A model generated the notes under the pieces. That model was not told the DNA's origin, ran no database searches, and saw only the letters and a list, made by a program, of their open reading frames with translations. A stretch of 64,000 nt of DNA from positions 1 to 64,000 of the forward strand of contig RBZT01000646.1 of the NCBI GenBank assembly GCA_003693705.1, read 5' to 3'. Shown here one piece after another: positions 8,375-31,500 of the stretch (positions are counted from its first letter, which is position 1; every line of letters starts with the position of its first letter). The DNA is from Polymyxa betae A26-41 (taxonomy: Eukaryota; Protista; Endomyxa: Phytomyxea). The position numbers were made by a program, and so were the translations under genes.

Positions 8375-9486
8375 ATGTCCGCCAGTGAGGGACGCTCGGA
8401 CCTGGCCTGGGTCGTCCCCGAGACCAACGAAACATTCAATGATTACCACGACTATGTCGGCCGCCTGATCGATCTGCGGCGCCCCAGGACGGACGCCGTC
8501 CTGACCGCCAGCGGCACGATCGTGCACCCGGCCAGCGACAAACCCGCCCGGCCTGTCATTGAGGTCGAGGCGCCGCTATCGAATCCGTCATTATTGAAAG
8601 CATTCCGATAGAGATCTGGTTATGATATCGTGACGTTCGAGATCTCGCCTGAGGACGCCCTGCGCCGTCTGGGCGGCTGCGAGTTTCATGCCACTGGCGT
8701 GGCGATCTCGGAACGCGTCCATCGATTAGAACGTGAAGTGAAGGCGCTGCTGGTGCAAACAGCGGACGAGGAGGTCGGCGCTGACATCATTGGCAACCTA
8801 CGCCGAATGAGAGCCGATCTTCGCCGAATATCAGATCGTCGTTCTGGTAATCATTTTGGGGTAGAAAGTGCTTTTAAAAAGGCTTTTTTTACCATTTCGT
8901 ATCTTGACAAAAAGCGACAACTGATAATTTGATTTTAGGGCCCGTATTGCTCGATACCGAAGGACCCGATCCAGGTGATTCCATACTGAAACTTCATGAA
9001 CGAGTTGCAAAGTTGGAAAGGGCGCTGGAAATCAGTACGCTCTCGAGTGCTGAGTCGTTGCTCGAAGAGTTAGAGGATCGCGTCGAGCTGCTATCCGAAT
9101 CGAAACTGGACAAGATCGCCGCCAAGTCGAAGCAGGCGCTGGTACAAATGCAGCTACTGTCGCAAGAAGCGTCATCGAACATCAACCGAACTGCATTTGA
9201 CGAATTACGCGATGCCGTCGCTAGATGGGACGATGTCGCCAATGCCGTTCCACATATTATTGAGCGTTTAATCGCCGTTAAGGATCTGCATCAACAAGGC
9301 GCGGACGTTGTCAATCGGGTGGTGGCGCTGGAGCAGGCCGTTCAGGTTGGCGATGAAAGACTACGGCAGAGCGAATCAGCGGTCTCTAATATCGAACGAA
9401 CGCTGGCTGATAATTTGAAGATTATGGAGGCTAACTGTGCGGCTCTATCTGAGAGATTAGATAGACTGGAACGAAGTAAACAATAA
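8375..9486 (+). CDS. DCTN2: Dynactin subunit 2 (dynamitin, p50)
   Basis: Three exons (introns ~8564-8611 and ~8847-8938). The coiled-coil C-terminus RWDDVANAVPHIIERLIAVKDLHQQ...NLKIMEANCAALSERL is typical of dynamitin. Confidence 0.75.
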
Positions 9487-9612
9487 TGTTGAAAATATTT
9501 CCTCTTTGTTTGATCGCTGTTAGTCAAGGGTTGAAGCTTTAAGAGATACTAATTGTGCTTTAGCAAGTTTAGCACTGATTGTGATTTTTATTGGAAATTT
9601 CTTCGCTCCTCA

Positions 9613-10671
9613 TCAATAGGATATGCACTCGATTTCAATACCGAGCGATTTGAGGACTTTTTTGCATGGGTCCCCGAAATGCTTGTTGCTAGCTTCGACC
9701 TCACATTCGCTCTTGCCTTGGCACCGCTTCTGAAGTATCTTGTGCGGCTTGTCGGAATTGCATTTATACTTCGGGTCGATTTTGAATCCATTCGCATCGC
9801 GGAACTGCTTCCCGTAACCAGCCCAAATGACATTCCCGAATCTGCCGTTCGGGCATTTCAGCGTCTGCTTAGAGTGTTCATTGACGACGAAGACCAGGTT
9901 CTTCTTAGGGAAGCTGGCAGCTGAGGCGCAGCGAGCCTGAACGGCCAGAGACTTGCCCACATTTTCGCATGGATCGTCGAAGAACTTATTTGCAGCAAGC
10001 AGCGTACAGCTGTTCCTTCCCAAACACTGTTGCTGGACGTTGCCCATCGACTTGGCGCTATTGCAGTTGAATCTCGGGTCGAGCTGGAAGCCAGAGGCTG
10101 TGATGAGTTGCCGGCCGTAGCTGGCGAAATCGATGCCCACTATGACTTCGCCGGCTTTACAGCTTAGTGTCCCTTTCTGGTTCTCTTGAATAGTCGTCTT
10201 GATGATGTTCTTCGGCGTCAGACTCGACGAACATTGCATTCGAACAGCCAGCGAGGTCAGCCCGGGACAGCGCTTGCCGAATCTTGAAGCATCGGGTGCA
10301 AACGAGCATTGCTGCTGGCCAATGCATGCATTCGAGACGATGTTCTTCACGTCTTTCTGGCAATTCGAATCGGCAACAAACTGACCATTGCTGGTCAGGC
10401 GGTAGGAGCCCCAACCGGCAAAATCGACGCTCGTGAATGTGCCGCCACCAGGGCAGCGGAATGTGTCCTTTTGGCCTTGCGGAATCGCAGCGATCACCCA
10501 ATCGTCGGCAGGGCATTCGGTCGGCGGCGCTACCGGCGCTGGGGCGACCATCCTCGCTTGCGTGATGCCTGGATTTGGACGTGGCTTCGTGTTGGAAGAA
10601 AGGCAGTCATCGGCAACGACGGCCAGGAAATATAGCGATACAAGCAGAGCATGAGACAGGATTGGGGACAT
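9613..10671 (-). CDS. Secreted protein with three tandem SUEL (D-galactoside/L-rhamnose-binding) lectin domains
   Basis: Signal peptide MSPILSHALLVSLYFLAVVA. Three repeats of L.C..G..I..A.YG...C......V...C.G...C...A.N..F.DPC....K.L.V...C. Single exon. Confidence 0.85.
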   Translation of the reverse strand: MSPILSHALLVSLYFLAVVADDCLSSNTKPRPNPGITQARMVAPAPVAPPTECPADDWVIAAIPQGQKDTFRCPGGGTFTSVDFAGWGSYRLTSNGQFVADSNCQKDVKNIVSNACIGQQQCSFAPDASRFGKRCPGLTSLAVRMQCSSSLTPKNIIKTTIQENQKGTLSCKAGEVIVGIDFASYGRQLITASGFQLDPRFNCNSAKSMGNVQQQCLGRNSCTLLAANKFFDDPCENVGKSLAVQARCASAASFPKKNLVFVVNEHSKQTLKCPNGRFGNVIWAGYGKQFRDANGFKIDPKYKCNSDKPHKILQKRCQGKSECEVEASNKHFGDPCKKVLKSLGIEIECISY

Positions 10672-10852
10672 GATTTTAGATGAAGGGAATGGACACTGAA
10701 TTTGATTCTGGCCAAGATTTTTGGTTCCGGCAGACTGTGAAACAAAAAGGTTGAGTCATCGTCCGGATAAAGCTTCCGATGACGCGACCGGATGTAGAAT
10801 GACAACAAGACGAATTGCAAGAGGAGATCTGTCATGCTGTTTTATTGCTGAC

Positions 10853-12514
10853 CTACGAACGCGTTAAGCCGCCTTCATCGGATATCGTATCCCATTGCTC
10901 AAAACGAGCATTCTCATTGGGTTGAAGACGGTGTAAGCTTTCTGAAAGGGTCCAAATCGCAACACTGCCATCGAGATCGCCACTAGCAATAAACGTTCCG
11001 TCATTCCTGTTGATTGCAACAGATACGGCGGACGCCCCGGTCTGATTCATAGGCAATGATAAGGCAGGACCATAAATGTTCTTGGAAAGATCCATAACAT
11101 GAACGACGCCCTTAACATCGGCGACAAAGGCCACTGAAGGACGGCAGTGTGACCATCTCGCGTCAGTCAAAGCCATCCCTGAAACATCCAGCGATATAAT
11201 CGGCGACGATCTTAGGACGTGATAGACCCGGAAGAAGCCATCCGCCGAACACGACAAGAACAAATGACGATGAAGACGAGAAAATGCGATTGAACGAAGA
11301 GGCCCCGCGTGGGCGTTGTAAACCAGTGTGGTAGTGACTGGATACAAGTCGTTGGGCGACGGGCGCGCAGCCCACACATCAGTCGTGTCGACACGGCGCA
11401 GCCCTCGTAGAATGGCCGCTCGCTCGACCTGTCTACGAAGCTCATTCGAATGACGAACGAGGGCGGCGGCCTGGGCGGTCCATAGTAGGGCGCCGTCGCG
11501 AACATCCGGTTTCCCATGATATTGGGTTGGGGTGAGAATCTGACAGCGAACCAAGCCTCCGGCTTCCGTTCCTGCAACGATCAGGCCGTCGATGGCTGGA
11601 GAGAAAGCGAAAGCGATCCCGCCAAGGACGCTGTGCTTGTTAGGTAGGACGCCATGGCCATGGTAGAGAGCACTTGGTGCGAGGCGAATGCCGGATATCG
11701 GGTTGGATAATTTGTTTGCCATGCTCCAGAGCAGAATTCGTCCATCGGCGCCGATGCTCGCTAACAAATAGTCGTTGAGGACGGCGTCATACGCCCATTC
11801 TAAAGCAGAAATGGGCTCGCGATGTGTCAAATCCTCGGTGACTGAACGTGTTATGATCGGGTCGGCGTCCCCTTCGGCTGCAATGTCGAGAAGCAGAATC
11901 TGCCCTGTGAAGATGCCCAGCGCTAGAAGGTTGGGTCGGACAGGATGGAAGCTCAAAGCGGTTGCGCATGAATCGATCGGTATATAACGATTTGGCCGAT
12001 CAGCGTTGATTTTCATGGCCAGATTCCATATGGATACCTGGGCTGAATGACGACACCATCCCGTGTGGTCGTACCGGCTATGAGCGACGGCGATAACGTG
12101 CCCACTGCAATTCCAATCAACGCGCGATACCGGCAACGAATTCGCTCGAATGCTGTACGCCAAATTCATGCTGTTGTCGTTATCGGATTGGGTGGTCGTT
12201 ATAAAGGTATCGATGCTGTCTTTTGCCAACGGTTCGTCTTCCAGTAAACAGAGAGCTTTTCGCAGAAATTCGGCCAGCGCTTGTTCATCGTAATCTGCAG
12301 AGATGACAGTCTCCTGACGAGTCTCGGTTTGAATTTTTATATCGCTTCTGGATGGGCTCTGTTCAGCTTTGTCTGCTGTCGTTATCGGTTGGGTCTGTAT
12401 AGTGGCATCCTGCCCTTCCTTTCTGATGAACTCACGCCACCTTGATGGGATGTCAGCTTCGGCGCATTCGGTATTACTCGAGAACATACCCCCTTCGAGC
12501 TCGTTGACCGTCAT
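10853..12514 (-). CDS. WDR34: WD40 protein WDR34 (dynein-2 intermediate chain 2)
   Basis: 553-aa intronless ORF with HSRYDHTGWCRHSAQVSIWNL, HREPISALEW, HRHLFLSCSADG and WSHCRPSVAF motifs characteristic of WDR34/DYNC2I2. Confidence 0.85.
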   Translation of the reverse strand: MTVNELEGGMFSSNTECAEADIPSRWREFIRKEGQDATIQTQPITTADKAEQSPSRSDIKIQTETRQETVISADYDEQALAEFLRKALCLLEDEPLAKDSIDTFITTTQSDNDNSMNLAYSIRANSLPVSRVDWNCSGHVIAVAHSRYDHTGWCRHSAQVSIWNLAMKINADRPNRYIPIDSCATALSFHPVRPNLLALGIFTGQILLLDIAAEGDADPIITRSVTEDLTHREPISALEWAYDAVLNDYLLASIGADGRILLWSMANKLSNPISGIRLAPSALYHGHGVLPNKHSVLGGIAFAFSPAIDGLIVAGTEAGGLVRCQILTPTQYHGKPDVRDGALLWTAQAAALVRHSNELRRQVERAAILRGLRRVDTTDVWAARPSPNDLYPVTTTLVYNAHAGPLRSIAFSRLHRHLFLSCSADGFFRVYHVLRSSPIISLDVSGMALTDARWSHCRPSVAFVADVKGVVHVMDLSKNIYGPALSLPMNQTGASAVSVAINRNDGTFIASGDLDGSVAIWTLSESLHRLQPNENARFEQWDTISDEGGLTRS

Positions 12515-14170: not shown

Positions 14171-17100
14171 ATGGCGAACACGCTTCCTAACCCCGATCTT
14201 CTACTGGCATGCCAAGAGCGAGCACAAAATAACGCGGCCCATAACGAACTGGTCTCGTTCGTCGACCAGAAAGGCCATGTTTCGGAATCGCTCACGAACG
14301 CCGCAATCTGGCAGCAATCCGGTTCAATCGCCTTCGCTCTCGTCAAGCAGTTCAAGCCTGGTGACAAGCTACTGCTCGTGTATACGCCCGGCATTGATTT
14401 CGTCCTGGCCTTTCTAGCGTGTATGCGTGCGGAAATTGTCGCTGTCCCAATCCCGCCTCCGGACCTGTCCCAGAACGGCGCCAAAGCCCAGGAGGAATCG
14501 CGCAAGTTCATCGCGATCGTGAACGCCTCGGGCGCTGTCGGCGTCCTGACCAACCAGGAATATCACCAGGCCAAAAACTTGACCGCTGTGAAGAAATGGA
14601 TCAAATCGTGGGTATGGACCGACAACAGCACAGTGTTGTGGCCGGATCTGCCTTGGATCGTCACCAACAGCCTTCGCTTCGGATCGGAGACGCTGCCGGC
14701 GCAGACGACCCCGACGCCGCCAGATCGTGTCGCCTTCCTGCAATTTACATCGGGATCGACATCGCAACCGAAGGGCGTGCGGTTGTTAACGCTCTATGTG
14801 AATATCTCAGACTGTTGACATTTTCTGCAGGATAACGTTCCGAAATATTCGGCATCAGCTGGAAGCGAACGCCGTCGTCTTGGGCATGAATGATAAGAGC
14901 TGCAGTGTCTGCTGGATGCCCCATTTCCACGATTTCGCATTAATCTCTCATATTTGCAGCGCCTTCATCGGCAACGGACGCCTCATCTTGTTATCGCCGC
15001 TTTCCTTCCTTGCTAAACCCATACTATGGATCGAACTAATTCAGCGCTATGGTGCCACCCATATTGCCTGTCCGCCATTCGCTCTTTCCATTCTCGTGAA
15101 AAAGACGACGCCAGAGCAGCGGGCGGCTCTAAAACTACATACAATCTCGTCGTTGTTGCTAGCAGCCGACGCCATCAAAGCAAGCGTGATCGACGAATTT
15201 TGCAAGGCGTTCGAAGTGGCAGGATTTCGTCGGGAGATGATCAGAACAGCTTATGGTCTAGCTGAGCATTGTGTCGGTATTACGATGACAACAGCAAAGG
15301 ATGCGGTCGTCGACATTTCCGTCGACAGCGACATTCTGTACAACGAGAGTCGCATTGAGATTTCGAAGACCAGTCCGTATTCCATCGTATCATGTGGCGT
15401 CCCTTTGCCGGGCGTCGTCGTCCGCGTCGTCGACCAGGACAAAGCCCTGCCGGACGGGTTCATTGGCGAAGTCTGGGCGAATTCCGATAGTAAAGCGGAT
15501 GGCTATGAAGGCCTGCCCGAGCTCAGCGAGACAACGTTCCAGGCGCGTATCGAAGGCGACGATCAGCGATCGTATGTGAGGACCGGCGATCTTGGATTCA
15601 TGTGGAAGGGACAGCTATACATCACTGGGCGCCTTAAAGAGATCATCAAAGTCTATGGAAGGACCATCCACCCAGTCGACATAGAGCTGTGCGCAACCCA
15701 GTCGAGCGACCTCCTCCGTCCTGGCTCTGTCTGTGCATTTGCCATCTCTCTCGATGATGGTGGCGATCGTCTTGTCATCCTGGCCGAGGTCGTCAAGGGC
15801 GCCAACCCAGACCAGGACGCCATTCATGACCTCGTCGATACGATTCGCCAGGCGATCCTGGCGACGTTCTCTGTTCCTTGCCAGGCCGTGATCCTAGGCC
15901 GACCCGGGCAGCTGGTTCGAAAGACGACCAGTGGTAAGGTACAGCGGGCGCAGCTACGAAATTGGTATCTGCAAGGAAAATTCACCCGGTCAGCGGATTT
16001 GTCGCCGCAGTCGCCGGTTTCCAAAGCCCTGTTGCACGTTTCTACAATTCAATCGCCAAAGGCATCGGTCCCATCTCGATCGTTTTCGTTCCAAGTGACT
16101 CCTGACGCCAGTGTTAATGAGCAGCGCTTGCGTCGTTTGTGTGCCGCTGCTCACGAGGCAGGATTCGCTGGCGAAATCCGCCAGCTGGTCTCATTGAGTG
16201 CCGCGCTCGCTCCACCCCGTATCGAACTGCAGCCGAAATGCCCTTTTCAAAAGCGTGTTTTTCACGCAACCGGCGTTGGCGCCAGCGGGCCCATTCGCAT
16301 GGCTGGTTTCGGTGAAGGCTTATTTGGACAAGAAGACTTAAACGCAGCGGTTCGGTTTTCCAATTTCATGTTCGCAGACGATCGTCATCCACAAATTCGC
16401 GGCGCTAGCTTCAGAATCTACTCGGGAGACGATTACGAGAATCCGCTTTTCGACCTGATTTTCCTCACCGGTGATGGACGCGCCGTCTTCCCTACCGCCG
16501 ACTTAGCCTTAAAAGTACTCAAGGACCACAGTCATGTCATGACATTGCCGCCGTCGCATCCTCTACGTGACGCTCATCGATGCGCTGTTCGTAAGGTGCC
16601 AGATTCATACGCTGAGCTACACTGGTTTGCCATTCATACATACTCGTGGCACTCGACACATTGGGCCCGTTTCCGTTTCCGACATCGCGACTCTAACACG
16701 AACCTTCCTCCATATTCCAATGATGTCAACTGCGATCTACTCGATTTGCGTCCTGATAGTCACGATCAACGCGATGCGTCATTCCTGAAACAGCGCTTCT
16801 CGGAGGAGTGTCGTAGTGGTGACGGCCAGCAATACGTTATCGAAGTGCAGATTCGCCCGAAGTCTAAAGATGAGCAGCTCGATCTGAAACTTCAAGACGG
16901 ACTGATTCCTTGGGACGATTGTCCCTGGCAGCCGTTTGCCGACGTTGTTCTGGATAATCCGCTCCCAGACACGGTCGTTGAAGGGCTCCGGTTTAACGTT
17001 GTCAACTCTCCGGCAGATGTTGAAATTGTATGTGGTGCAGACGCTCACCATCCGGCGTCTTCCGCTCACGCCCGGGCCATCACGTACGCCATTGCGTCCC

Positions 17101-19583
17101 ATGTTCGCTGTGGCATCATGTTGCCCGACTATCTGGCTGCGTTTAGTAACAAGAATCCTTCGCCATATCTGCTCAACACCCTGCAGGGATCGACAACAGA
17201 ACGCCCAACTGTTGTCGTTATCGGTGGAGGTGTCTCTGGTTTGGCTGCAGCAATGTCCCTAGAACGGCGCGGATACCAAGTCACTGTGCTGGAGGCGGCC
17301 CCAAATGTTGGCGGTAAAGCTTCGTCCCTCTGGATTGACAAGAAGGTGTACGACTGGGGAGGGCATCTTTGTAATAATTCGTATCACTGTGTCCGCGCTC
17401 TTGTTAATCGTTTTGGTCTGAAAATCGAACCGGCTGCTCCTCCGCACCTGTTTAACTGCCAGGATAGTCGCTCTACTATCTGTAATATCTTTGAGAATCG
17501 CGGACTTGAGCAATTCAGGAAGGCAATGTACTCCATGACAGAGAACTTTGGTGTCCGCGATCGCGTTTCAGCACCGCTGACGGAATGGGCGAGCTCAGTT
17601 AAAGTCCCTTGGCGCCAATGGATCGAAGACGACCCGAAGCGAAAGATGTGGCTTTGGCCAGTCGTTCTGCAAATGAATTCTTGCGGTTACGGGTTTTCCC
17701 TCGATCACGAGGTCCCGCTCGCGTTTCTCGCGAAACTAATCGCCGTCTCTGATGAGTTCAGCTCGGTCGGTTGGACTTTGGAGACCGGCATGCAGTCGCT
17801 CTATGACGCCATGGGCGCCACTCTTGATGATCTACGCCTCAATTCTACAGTCGCTGGGATTGAACGGCGTGACGGATCTGCTTACGTCCGGTTGTCGAGT
17901 GATGAAACAATTGTCGCCGATCATGTTATTTCGTCGCTCACGGTGCCCCAGACAGTGGCTCTCCTGGCGAATCCCTCTGAGACAGAACGCGCGGTTGCTC
18001 GTGACGTCCACACATTCTCATACTACACTACGATCGCCCGCTGCAAAGGCCTGGAAAAATATCCAATCGGATTTCACGTCATGGACCAGCATAACGAACC
18101 CGATCTTGCTCTAAAGAATCTCGGCCACGTAGTTGCTTGGCACAAGCGTTACACAGATTCGGACATCTTTCTGTTCTATTCGTTCGCGCCCGATCTGCAG
18201 TCAGACGATCTTGTTCAACGCTTTGTGCTCGAAGACGTTGTGCAGATATTGGGCGGGGAACTTATTAAGATTGTGGCACAGCGCGCGTTCGACTTCTTCC
18301 CCTATGCCTCTTATCCGGACCATTTCTATCCGAAGCTATCCAAGATCCAAGGCCACCAACATCTTTGGCATATCGGCAGTATTTTTAATATCGAGTAAGT
18401 TGATCTCTGTTTCTATCTTCTTTATTTAATCAGTTTCCGTCGCATCTGCGCCCCATTTGTACAGCAACTATTCAAAATATTCGAACCTCGGCTTCATCAT
18501 CGAGATATCTAATGGACGCGTTTTAGGTTAATGGAAGGGAACATTGGTTTCGCTCAACGCATGGTTCAGAATCACTTTCCGGTCGTCAATGACGGTGCTC
18601 TCTTCTCTCCTTCGCCTAACTCGATTCCTGGTGTGCAGCGGAAGCTAACAGCGACTGAGCGATATATTGCCGAGGCCATCTTGGCTGAATCAACGGAGAG
18701 CTTTGATCCAGAGTTGGTTGGTCCTTCTGACAAAATCGCCAATTTTGGAATTACATCAATCGCGCTGCCAGCTCTGGCCTCGAAGTTTAGCGAATATACT
18801 GGCGCCCATGTTCGTCTGCTTGATTGCGCTATGTACCCTAGCATCAAGGAGCTTGGTGCTTTCCTCGACAGACTTCGCCAAGAGTCTCAACGTTCATTCC
18901 AGTGTATCAAAACTGTACGCCCGGGTAATGAAGAGACCGGTTCGGTCTTATTCATGATCCACGATGGTGTTGGACGTACCCATCAGTATATCAGCAACTC
19001 TCCGAGGTTTAATTTCCCTCTGTCATTGGTGCAGCCATACTGGGAAGAGGCCAACGTCGATGTTATCGCATCGCTAGATGAAGTTGCTGCTTTATATGTT
19101 AGCAAGATCCGGGCTGAGCAGCCGCAGGGGCCTTGGCGGTTGGGTGGATTTTCCATGGGAGCCATGCTGGCCTGGCGTATGTCGCAGATGCTCGGTGATG
19201 TTGATCGCTTAGTTCTGATTGATTGCCCGGACGTCCCGCATCAACCAGGCAAAGGTACAGCTGATGCAGGCACCGTCGACAAGTTGCGAAAGCAGTTCTT
19301 GGACCTGGATCAGTCCGAGCATGGCCGCGTCTTGAGAGATCAGATTCCAAAAATGTCGTTGCTGCCTGGGACGCGATCAGCTCCAACCCTGGTCATAGCT
19401 GGTTCACAGGGAATTGTTCAGGAGATGCAACTGGCATCTACCGCGGAGATGCGGCAGAGCTGGGAGTTGGCCATCGGTCATCAGCTCCGTTTCATCAGTG
19501 TCGATGGCGCCAGTCATATGGACATTATGAACGCGCCACATGCGGATCAGGTGTTTTCTGAAATTCAACAATTCTTGAAGTGA
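14171..19583 (+). CDS. Multidomain fatty-acid-modifying megaenzyme: FAAL - catalase-like (AOS-type) - FAD oxidoreductase (PUFA-isomerase-like) - ACP - thioesterase, ~1,743 aa
   Basis: Exons 14171-14781, 14831-18394 and 18527-19583 splice in frame (GT..AG). FAAL motifs: FLQFTSGSTSQPKG, WMPHFHD, YGLAEH, RTGDLGF, KTTSGK. Catalase-like: RVFHATG, VRFSN, RAITY. FAD: IGGGVSG..EAAPNVGGK. ACP: FGITSI. TE: GGFSMG..LID..H. The start codon is uncertain (alternative ATG at 14010). Confidence 0.85.
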
Positions 19584-28588: not shown

Positions 28589-31500
28589 TCAAGGAGAAGC
28601 GACTTCGTAGTCGCTGAATGGAACAGACTGACGACCCGGTGATGACTGCCTCACTGATCCAATGCTTGGAATCCGACTAGCCCGCCCACGACATATCAGG
28701 TCAAGTTTTCCAACATAGAGTGCAGCTAGTGACACTGCAACGAATACGTTGACACCGAGGCCACGTAGCAGAACCAAAGCATCAGGACTGGAATGCAGAA
28801 GAAACTGCAATGGTAATACTAACGACGAATAGATCGCGACGAAAACTAGCGACACCGCAATCGACGAGGATTCATTGAAATCAGTTGGAACGTTACGAGC
28901 GTGCCACTACAACCTGTTAAGTTAATGCGAGAATGGAAAAATGATCATTACCGCTATTCTGGCACCCCATACGGTTAGCAAAGCACAGGCTGTCAACACC
29001 ATGGCCAGATTCGACTCATGAATTGTGCACCGAGACATTGTGTATGCAACATCTGGCGATGGAGCTGTCAATTCTGGTGCTGGAACAACCTGTCGAACTG
29101 AAGCAAATTCGATTGAATGAATCGTCAAAAATGCAGTCATTGCCATCGCCATCAATCCGATTCCTCTGAACAGCGTAGAATCGGGAATAGAGACAACCCG
29201 CATTGACCTTGAAACAAAAATCTAGAGAAAATTGTTTAGCAATCCAGGAAGAAGATACAGTACTCAAACTCAAACCTTATCTATTCGGTAAATCTTCATA
29301 TAAACAGGACTAAACATGATTGTGAACCCAAGACCAGAAAGCCACCAGCGAAGTTCGCATATTAAATCACCATATTCCTCATCAACAGGTGAGGCAAATG
29401 CCAGTGAGGATGAACTCAAGATCAAAGCACCAAATAGGTTGATAAGAAGAAGAAGCGGAGAAGCTGCTTTGATCATAGGGGATTTACGATTAAGATACAC
29501 CAACACTCCGATGATTAAGACAGAAAAGGCGACGAATATGAAGCTGGCGCCAATGAGAGAATACAATATTGAAGAACTTTCATAAGGAATAAGGAATAAC
29601 CTTACAGGAAGTCTTAAAAGTAAAGAATCGTAGCATTCGCGCTGCCTGCTCGTATCTGATGGTGTGATTGCGACATGAATAAACGATATAGGAGCAGAAA
29701 CTGCCTCTCTGGTAACATTCACAATAACGAAGCTCTGCGGGTCGATTTCGCCAGAACTTGGAATTATTTTGAATTGATCAGTTTCCGTCAGTACTGCAGT
29801 CCAGGGCAGCATAATGGGACCGTTGTTAATAAGTACGATGGAGGCAATTGCCAACCTGCCCTCAGATTGCCGTATCTCGTAGTTCCAGAGCTTAGGCGAA
29901 CCATTCGCCGCTACTGGACAGATATAACAGGACCCGTCCTGATCCAAAAACCTTCCATTATTGCATTCGCCTGCCAATCGAATTGGGTTTGCACTCAGAT
30001 CGATAATGCCTCTAAAGATACTAGTTAAGCATATGAGTGACATGATTTTTGTCAGCTTACCTCCGTTCTTCATAATCAGATTCGTGAATCACTTTAGAAG
30101 AAAAAAACTCCACAATGGCTTGCGTAACGGTTGTGATACCATCATGGAAATCGTATCCATGTTTTGGAATCAACTCATATTCATCTCCTCCACCTCGCAC
30201 AAACCCATTCGTGGCCACGACATATGATTCCTCAACTGATATATTTTTCCACTGGGATCCTTGAAGAATTTCAATCCAGGTGATTCGACCATATTTGGAA
30301 CCATTTTTGATGTTTAGCGACCATTTGAATTTCACTCCCGATACTTGAGGAAAAGCATTATCTATCCTGAGCTTAGTGGCGGCTTGAAGTGTTTGGAGCA
30401 GATAGCCGCCTGAGATGGAGAATACACATATCGTATCCATAAAAGGGACCACCTAAATAAACTGAGCACCAGGCACTTTTGCATGAAGAAAAACAATTAC
30501 CGAAAGGATTTGATCCCGAGTAATGTTCCCAGCTGGAAATACATCCCTTAATGTGCCTTTGTTGATAATTACAACATCTGGATTGAATCCCATTTTTCTG
30601 GCCATGAACATAATCGAATCAGCCACAATGTCTCCTGTTGACTGACTATAATTCTCGATATCACTCTGGCGCATACTAAGCTTGGTTGTGAAATCAATTC
30701 TCCCAACGATATCTGTAGCAACAGCTCTCTCGTATTTTTCGACGGCATTCTTTAAATACAAAGATATTGCCGGATCTGGTGGAACAGTCAAGTTGATCGG
30801 CACAATAGTGGACATGGCTTTTGCAATGCTTCGGTCTGGGTTAACATTGATATCAATACGAAGAAAAGATCTTCCAAATGAGCAAGCATCTTCACAGGAA
30901 AACACCGTCTGGTTTCCATATAACGACTTCTGATTGACAATCTGAATATCCATAAATGGGAATTCGGGTAAGCAATTATCGATGCACTTCGCTCCCAAGC
31001 TGCCAGAGTTATCAGCGACGATAACAATATCAGCGCTCATGCCTTTGGCTTCGCCAATTGCTTCTCCAGTAAAACCGATCCGATTTCTGGTCGTGAAATT
31101 GTTTGCGAATGATGTGCCTGCAGTCAAGGCTGTGGCGTAATTCGCTCCGACAATGGCGACTTTAACGCCATTAGGTAAGCTTTGCATTGAAAACGGGTGA
31201 TACGCTCTCTGGCGAGTATGGCGAGAAATTATGTTAGCAGAAACCACTGGGATTCCGGATTGAGCTTCGAAGCCTTCGGGCTCGTTTTTGTCCACAGACC
31301 AGTCCAGATTTCTTGGAACCATGGCTGCAAACTTAAACGGTCGCATAGCCATCGACTGCAACTGACCGCGATAATAACGATAAAGTCCATCAACGGCCAG
31401 CAAGTTGCCCATGTCAACGAAGACAACATTTCCTCTTGTCTCATTGATGATGCGCTTGTACAGTGTTGACTTCCTAGCAAGACCTCCCAGACCTGCTTAA

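Follow-up and report, generated by a model that had tools for sequence, protein, structure and literature searches.

A five-domain gene of Polymyxa betae predicted to encode a carrier-protein-dependent fatty-acid tailoring enzyme

Until now, to our knowledge, the catalase-type haem enzymes recognised in fatty-acid hydroperoxide chemistry have been partners in lipoxygenase fusions of corals and a few microbes. Among flavoenzymes, the polyunsaturated fatty acid isomerase (PAI) turns linoleic acid into trans-10,cis-12 conjugated linoleic acid (PMC13365329). Here we describe a gene of the plasmodiophorid Polymyxa betae in which relatives of both enzymes are predicted to lie side by side within one carrier-protein machine. 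The gene occupies positions 14171-19583 (+) of contig RBZT01000646.1, of which a stretch of 64,000 nt (the window) was analysed; all coordinates refer to the forward strand of that whole stretch unless another contig is named. It encodes, in this order, a fatty acyl-AMP ligase (FAAL) domain, a catalase-related haem domain (CAT), a PAI-family domain binding flavin adenine dinucleotide (FAD), an acyl carrier protein (ACP) and a thioesterase (TE).

Several described systems share parts of this design. The fusion of coral allene oxide synthase (cAOS) with a lipoxygenase in Plexaura homomalla (1u5u / 3dy5) and the mini-catalase of M. avium (3e4w) have in common with the Polymyxa haem domain a catalase core fold without the C-terminal extras, as well as the haem residues, and cAOS resembles it further in being fused to an enzyme for unsaturated fatty acids, an assignment that rests on homology for the Polymyxa partner. 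That partner is, however, a flavoenzyme and not a lipoxygenase; Thr66 of cAOS is replaced by Phe and the distal Asn by Leu or Gln at a position that varies across the family, K107 is not kept, and the whole haem domain is embedded in a FAAL/ACP/TE frame. The homology to PAI is full-length and includes the last helix and the FAD dinucleotide-binding motif, but PAI is a stand-alone enzyme of free fatty acids whereas the Polymyxa domain is one of five and is accompanied by a carrier protein. The JamABC, cay and pgn cassettes (PMC8406139) follow a comparable logic of FAAL activation, ACP loading, oxidative modification and TE release without chain extension; their tailoring is carried out by membrane di-iron desaturases from separate genes, in contrast to the soluble flavin and haem domains present here on one polypeptide. 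Land-plant proteins from Selaginella and Eucalyptus contain a PAI-like FAD domain, a FAAL, an ACP and a catalase-related domain with the same haem residues (R-F-H / R / R-Y-R), but in the order FAD-FAAL-ACP-...-CAT and with no TE detected by BLAST (PMC8460268). Finally, all five domains occur in the same order in Actinomycetota, at 27% identity over CAT-FAD; there they are divided between two overlapping, intronless genes, FAAL and CAT-FAD-ACP-TE, usually with a P450 gene next to them and often with pfaD/pfaA/pfaC-like genes in the flanks.

According to a splice model that rests on comparison and is strongly supported, the interval 14171-19583 is one intact three-exon gene (Table 1), as had been proposed by an initial sequence-only reading that described a single spliced gene of ~1,743 amino acids. 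Three open stretches in one orientation make up the interval, and their 611 + 3564 + 1054 coding bases add up to 5,229, or 1,743 codons. Intron 1 splits the Pfam AMP-binding profile cleanly, exon 1 matching up to profile position 180 and exon 2 resuming at 183 and continuing through 383, and read-through of intron 2 leads to a stop codon. Both introns recur at identical codon positions and phases in a paralogue of the same genome, where the intron sequences are only 33% (intron 1) and 37% (intron 2) identical to those of the window gene, compared with 74% for exon DNA. In P0002, a Streptomyces homologue that has no introns, residue 783 is matched by the end of exon 2 and residue 788 by the beginning of exon 3; the 4 residues in between are accounted for, so that the joint is collinear with an uninterrupted protein. 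The first 17 residues of exon 3 correspond to the final helix of the flavin domain, as in PAI itself; a division into two genes at intron 2 is therefore unlikely, because it would sever this conserved helix from its domain. Sequence searches were run exon by exon on the in-frame stretches 14171-14779, 14832-18392 and 18528-19580, with overall residue numbers obtained by arithmetic. They bear out the earlier account of five domains with neither a ketosynthase (KS) nor a condensation (C) domain, and position arithmetic puts ~840 residues between the FAAL and the start of the ACP. With Pfam and NCBIfam, no exon yielded a KS or C domain, which sets the gene apart from polyketide synthases and non-ribosomal peptide synthetases, and the motifs quoted in the sequence-only reading were all located in the sequence.

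Table 1. Predicted features of the five-domain gene and the evidence for each (window coordinates).
Feature	Position	Strand	Basis
Exon 1: start codon and N-terminal part of FAAL	14171-14781	+	Pfam AMP-binding 3.9e-19, profile positions 6-180; FAAL families top in NCBIfam; paralogue 72% identical
Intron 1, 49 nt, GT..AG, splits Arg codon after 2nd base	14782-14830	+	junction reading; intron shared with paralogue
Exon 2	14831-18394	+	in-frame reading between introns
Exon 2, first part: rest of FAAL with C-terminal subdomain	14831-16016	+	NCBIfam PRK05850 fatty-acid--AMP ligase 2.7e-64
Catalase-related haem domain	16239-17156	+	phmmer 1u5u 6.8e-10; profile 9.1e-53; Foldseek 1u5u first
PAI-family FAD domain, GxGxxG at ~17214-17231	17187-18394	+	phmmer 2b9w 9.4e-19; profile 2.8e-59
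Intron 2, 132 nt, GT..AG, splits Glu codon after 2nd base	18395-18526	+	junction reading; intron shared with paralogue
Exon 3, TGA stop at end	18527-19583	+	junction reading
C-terminal helix of FAD domain, start of exon 3	18527-18578	+	aligns with last PAI helix and bacterial homologues
ACP domain, predicted phosphopantetheine Ser 18756-18758	18645-18872	+	Ser alignment with homologues; Pfam sub-threshold
Type I thioesterase and stop codon	18948-19583	+	Pfam Thioesterase (PF00975) 4.3e-16

The haem domain is assigned to the catalase-related proteins of the cAOS / mini-catalase clade, and its nearest solved relative is cAOS and no true catalase. With the single sequence Pfam Catalase gives 0.006, below its cut-off, while phmmer already retrieves 1u5u, the coral allene oxide synthase, at 6.8e-10. 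A profile built from 24 family members separates the candidates: 1u5u scores 9.1e-53 (residues 63-361), the M. avium mini-catalase 3e4w 3e-17 and true catalases 6e-13 at best. An AF2 model of the domain (pLDDT 73.6, pTM 0.79) leads Foldseek to the same relative, with 1u5u ranked first (E 1.5e-17, TM 0.67/0.72) and 3e4w at a TMt of 0.70. Profile and Foldseek alike thus describe a catalase core fold of about 300-370 residues that lacks the catalase C-terminal domain, and the sequence-only proposal of a catalase- or allene oxide synthase-like domain holds. The key residues of cAOS are the haem arginines 64/102/360, the distal His67 and the proximal Tyr353 (PMC5617202). All of them have counterparts in the window gene (distal His 16263-16265, proximal Tyr 17085-17087, haem Arg at 16254, 16353 and 17106) and are conserved in 28-32 of 32 family members. 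Lys107, which binds the free carboxylate in cAOS, is not conserved.

The haem domain also occurs in other settings. One homologue (P0015) carries two of them in tandem ahead of its flavin domain, and in an actinobacterial metagenome-assembled genome a separate second catalase-related gene (L017 3130-4200) lies ~6 kb upstream of the pair formed by the FAAL and CAT-FAD-ACP-TE genes.

The assignment of the flavin domain to the PAI family is based on end-to-end homology. Pfam labels the domain Amino_oxidase (1.3e-20), but its closest solved relative over the full length is the PAI of P. acnes, 2b9w, in agreement with the PAI-like domain that had been proposed. The match covers chain residues 8-403 with phmmer (9.4e-19) and residues 8-423 of 424 with the family profile (2.8e-59); the second-best profile match, a monoamine oxidase at 4.8e-25, is limited to the nucleotide-binding half. 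Among the solved structures matched, PAI is the sole flavin fatty-acid double-bond isomerase of its kind. Identity to the flavin domains of other family members is 27-32%, and at the position of PAI Arg88 the window gene has His and most bacterial members have Arg. Many Streptomyces species also have stand-alone PAI-like flavoenzymes (L046-L084) that are ~420 residues long and share 67-76% identity with the P0002 flavin domain; for most of them, an ABC-ATPase-like gene lies 4-7 kb downstream in the opposite orientation.

The adenylation domain is classed as FAAL type, nearer to FAALs than to acyl-CoA ligases. Several FAAL families in NCBIfam (FadD21/28/32-type) score from 2.7e-64 to 7e-54. The best match in the PDB is 7r7f (6e-52), deposited as 'Polyketide synthase', and further matches down to 1e-32 comprise 3kxw, FadD32, FadD23, FadD28 and 3pbk, named FAALs among them, compared with merely 1e-11 to 1e-14 for CoA ligases. 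The domain had been predicted not to group with the latter, and on these scores it does not. The TSGST..PKGV motif lies at 14741-14779 in exon 1 (Lys 14771-14773) and the C-terminal SGK motif at 15927-15938 (lysine 15936-15938). The region aligns to FAAL structures with small gaps, and the 43-residue spacing that follows its YGLAE motif would fit the FAAL-specific insertion, at the site where we take that insertion to lie. Such an insertion and a blocked CoA pocket are features of FAALs (PMC8460268).

At the C-terminal end, the ACP falls short of its profile threshold (Pfam PP-binding 0.0088, 16.7 against a cut-off of 20.8). Its Ser nevertheless lines up with a Ser that is invariant in homologues, and the ACPs of these pass Pfam at 40-46 bits. 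In the TE the triad is complete, with Ser 19152-19154 in a GxSxG motif, Asp 19221-19223 and His 19515-19517, and is kept in the paralogue and the bacterial homologues; both the predicted phosphopantetheine Ser and the TE triad are therefore intact, as the sequence-only reading had it. The lid region of the TE (18948-19574) is ~60 residues shorter in both Polymyxa copies than in actinobacterial homologues.

A second intact five-domain copy resides on another contig of the Polymyxa assembly (G000:C49; L005 3438-8924, +), 72% / 67% / 57% identical in amino-acid sequence over exons 1 / 2 / 3. The search covered 27,085,814 bases in 1,001 contigs; the published draft, binned from infected-root DNA, is given as 1,001 contigs and 27,085,946 bp (PMC6328671). 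When the two copies are compared, each domain has a dN/dS of 0.08-0.19, although synonymous sites are close to saturation, and by this comparison all five domains are under purifying selection. A diverged paralogue and low dN/dS throughout mean that the window gene is not a chance feature.

The architecture is widespread and recurrent, and the possibility that it was unique to this gene falls away. When 1.84 billion representatives were scanned by HMMER with the haem-plus-flavin stretch, 55 matches fell below 1e-30, and the five window domains were mapped onto the best 150 clusters at 50% identity. Among these, 20 clusters have FAAL-CAT-FAD in the order of the window gene and 27 have CAT-FAD(-TE) without a FAAL; in 8 the FAD domain precedes the FAAL, 2 of them ending in a haem domain. 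The same-order proteins come from bacteria (Polyangiaceae, Archangium and the cyanobacteria Coleofasciculus and Trichocoleus) and from eukaryotes (the chytrid Spizellomyces, the green alga Myrmecia bisecta and the malawimonad Gefionella), and a permuted form is found in Selaginella and Eucalyptus. The plant form, which the sequence-only reading had described as having the same domain set in another order, does exist and was noticed by Patil et al. 2021, who stated its function as unknown (PMC8460268). The off-loading end differs among homologues and is a TE, a PlsC-type acyltransferase, or a BD-FAE esterase followed by a TE. The HMMER matches include no closer orthologue, for example from Plasmodiophora, the nearest being a 56%-identical metagenomic fragment (P0013). 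In a FastTree phylogeny of the flavin domain the two Polymyxa copies are joined with a support of 100 on a long branch, which falls in a polytomy with other eukaryotic lineages outside a mostly bacterial group; we claim neither a donor nor a direction of transfer.

Gene order was surveyed in Actinomycetota and at four single loci of fused bacterial members. In Actinomycetota, the FAAL and CAT-FAD-ACP-TE parts of the unit are separate genes that often overlap. A FAAL gene lies directly upstream of the CAT-FAD-ACP-TE or FAD-ACP-TE gene, ending at its start, at 39 of the 41 actinobacterial loci; a P450 gene follows directly at 23, and pfaD/pfaA/pfaC-like genes lie inside the 10-kb flanks at 22. 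These pfa-like genes resemble type L secondary-lipid synthases, the product of which is uncharacterised (PMC3098273). The fully fused bacterial genes stand alone or, in one case, beside genes for a fatty-acid desaturase and a thiolase. The family appears to be sparse in Actinomycetota, since none of 300 evenly sampled genomes of this phylum gave a further haem-domain match at 1e-20. A full-length AF2 model of the Streptomyces protein P0002 (pLDDT 82) contains four well-folded domains, with linkers 367-393, 809-830 and 910-935 below pLDDT 50; disordered linkers between folded domains are as expected for a mobile carrier. With a pTM of 0.48, this model gives no reliable information on the relative orientation of the haem and flavin sites.

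With slightly better than even confidence, we regard the product of the window gene as a self-contained, carrier-protein-dependent fatty-acid tailoring enzyme with a loading step, a flavin step, a haem step and release by the TE. The FAAL would adenylate a free fatty acid with a long, probably polyunsaturated chain, and the acyl group would be passed to the phosphopantetheine arm of the enzyme's own ACP and not to CoA. The PAI-family domain would then act on the double-bond system of the tethered chain, by double-bond migration or by oxidation of a bis-allylic carbon, after which the cAOS-type haem domain would convert a peroxide-level intermediate in the manner of allene oxide synthases, hydroperoxide lyases or epoxy-alcohol-forming enzymes, and the TE would free the modified acid. 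This reading is favoured because of the domain identities, the kept catalytic residues and the purifying selection in all five domains, and because of the fusion and splitting of the unit in bacteria (a Rosetta-stone pattern) and its neighbours there, namely polyunsaturated fatty acid (PUFA)-synthase, desaturase and thiolase genes. The interchangeable off-loading domains fit an acyl product that is held on the ACP until release, and the cassettes of FAAL, ACP, desaturase and TE in alkyne and polyyne biosynthesis provide a characterised precedent (PMC8406139). The sequence-only reading had arrived at a similar scheme of a fatty acid that is activated, tethered, rearranged and released by the TE; its domain reading largely stands. 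The substrate class, the tethering during catalysis, the order of tailoring, the product and the biological role are inferred.

A number of observations weigh against this scheme. PAI works on free fatty acids and not on thioesters. In the distal haem pocket the window gene has Phe at the position of cAOS Thr66, as is the case in 21 of 32 members. At the position of Asn137 it has Leu (16464-16466) and the paralogue has Gln, compared with Asn in 21 of 22 aligned actinobacterial members. The window gene therefore does not have the Thr66 and Asn137 of a coral-type allene oxide synthase proper and, with both residues replaced, its chemistry may differ from that of allene oxide synthase; in cAOS itself, mutations of Asn137 alter the rate and not the chemistry (cited in PMC5617202). 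Pfam finds no lipoxygenase domain in the window gene that could supply a hydroperoxide, and lipoxygenase-like exons occur only on another contig (G000:C19), unlinked to it. Five of the best 150 clusters have FAAL-FAD without a haem domain, which makes the haem step an optional one across the wider family. In the 8-10 kb flanks examined around fully fused bacterial members no PUFA-synthase genes were found, and a literature search turned up no characterised family member.

The main rival, which we hold to be rather unlikely, couples the two redox domains through hydrogen peroxide. A flavin oxidase or desaturase would produce H2O2 while acting on the tethered chain, and the haem domain would either remove it or use it as the oxidant in a peroxygenase-type epoxidation or hydroxylation, with no lipid hydroperoxide involved. 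Reduction of O2 to H2O2 is common in the amine-oxidase superfamily, to which the flavin domain belongs; in most members the haem and flavin domains are neighbours with a short linker between them; there is no fused or linked lipoxygenase; and haem-less members exist, as expected of an accessory domain. Yet the haem domain is far nearer to cAOS (9e-53) than to the catalases that dismutate H2O2 (6e-13 at best), cAOS is no H2O2 scavenger (PMC5617202), and among the relatives of the flavin domain it is an isomerase that comes closest, and no oxidase.

A more ambitious version of the tailoring scheme is a lipoxygenase-independent, carrier-bound oxylipin route, to which we give a somewhat smaller chance again. 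Here the PAI-like flavin domain would remove a bis-allylic hydrogen, O2 would add, and the haem domain would rearrange the tethered hydroperoxide to an allene oxide, an epoxy alcohol or a cleavage product ahead of release by the TE. If this were true, oxylipin synthesis would have a second, independent origin in a large and as yet uncharacterised enzyme family spread over bacteria, protists, fungi, algae and plants.

The same enzymology might serve another role, that of supplying the parasite with part of its own structural or storage lipids, for example the conjugated or oxygenated acyl chain of a spore or membrane lipid, with no secreted signal or toxin; this we consider improbable. One homologue ends in a PlsC-type glycerolipid acyltransferase in place of the TE, the family is found mostly in free-living organisms, and inspection by eye shows no signal peptide in the window protein, the gene for which is surrounded by ordinary genes. 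The window gene itself, however, ends in a TE, which would normally free an acid or a lactone. The converse suggestion of the sequence-only reading, that the product mimics host jasmonates or oxylipins or is otherwise linked to parasitism, was considered and set aside for want of support, which does not make it impossible: free-living bacteria, a chytrid, a green alga, a malawimonad and plants all have homologues, so the family resides mostly in organisms that do not parasitise plants, and the neighbours of the window gene are of an ordinary housekeeping type.

Adenylation of an amino or aryl acid, with the flavin domain as a true amine oxidase acting on it, is very improbable: the single-sequence Pfam label of the flavin domain, 'amine oxidoreductase', would suit it, but FAAL families and structures are by far the top matches, the full-length PAI match lies 34 orders of magnitude above any amine oxidase by profile, and the bacterial neighbours are PUFA-synthase-like, desaturase and thiolase genes. 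An artefact (two or three genes wrongly joined, a pseudogene or a bacterial contaminant) had to be weighed because the assembly was binned from infected-root DNA (PMC6328671), and is hardly credible given the spliceosomal introns with matching positions and phases in a diverged paralogue, the final FAD helix beyond intron 2 with a joint collinear to the intronless homologue, open frames with dN/dS of 0.08-0.19, eukaryotic neighbours (dynamitin, WD40, class C GPCR) and third-codon-position GC content (GC3) like that of those neighbours.

The genomic setting is unremarkable. The neighbours (8929-12514, 29270-31412) comprise a dynamitin fragment, a triple SUEL lectin, a WD40 protein and a class C G protein-coupled receptor (GPCR) with a 5'-nucleotidase-like part; the GC3 of the window gene, 0.54-0.57, is inside their range. 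No lipid or secondary-metabolism gene is among these examined neighbours, and there is no biosynthetic cluster around the window gene. A 314-residue protein filed as Beta vulgaris (P0012 = KMS94374.1) on a 944-bp contig is 100% identical to 16335-17276; the contig is probably parasite DNA within the sugar-beet assembly, as expected for a root parasite.

Elsewhere the Polymyxa genome contains phosphopantetheinyl transferase (PPTase) genes, a desaturase and the lipoxygenase-like exons. The latter are three short exons above the Pfam lipoxygenase cut-off (G000:C19:41241-41988 (-), L092); they look like a many-exon lipoxygenase-like gene, which could be a supplier of hydroperoxide. A single open frame of 1,184 residues with ketosynthase and PPTase matches (G000:C591:38553-40583 (-)) resembles the alpha subunit of a fatty acid synthase of the fungal type. 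On this basis Polymyxa may have its own fatty-acid synthesis, in contrast to what has been reported for Plasmodiophora brassicae (PMC4471660).

Overall, the window gene combines known parts in an arrangement for which no characterised example was found. A flavin and a haem domain are united in one predicted carrier-protein machine that recurs in bacteria and in at least five eukaryotic lineages, and the intronless Streptomyces gene pair beside PUFA-synthase-like genes lends itself to working out the chemistry. In the plasmodiophorid, a virus vector that lives as an obligate parasite in the roots of sugar beet, two gene copies with all domains under purifying selection suggest, at the level of sequence, a capacity to produce modified fatty acids.

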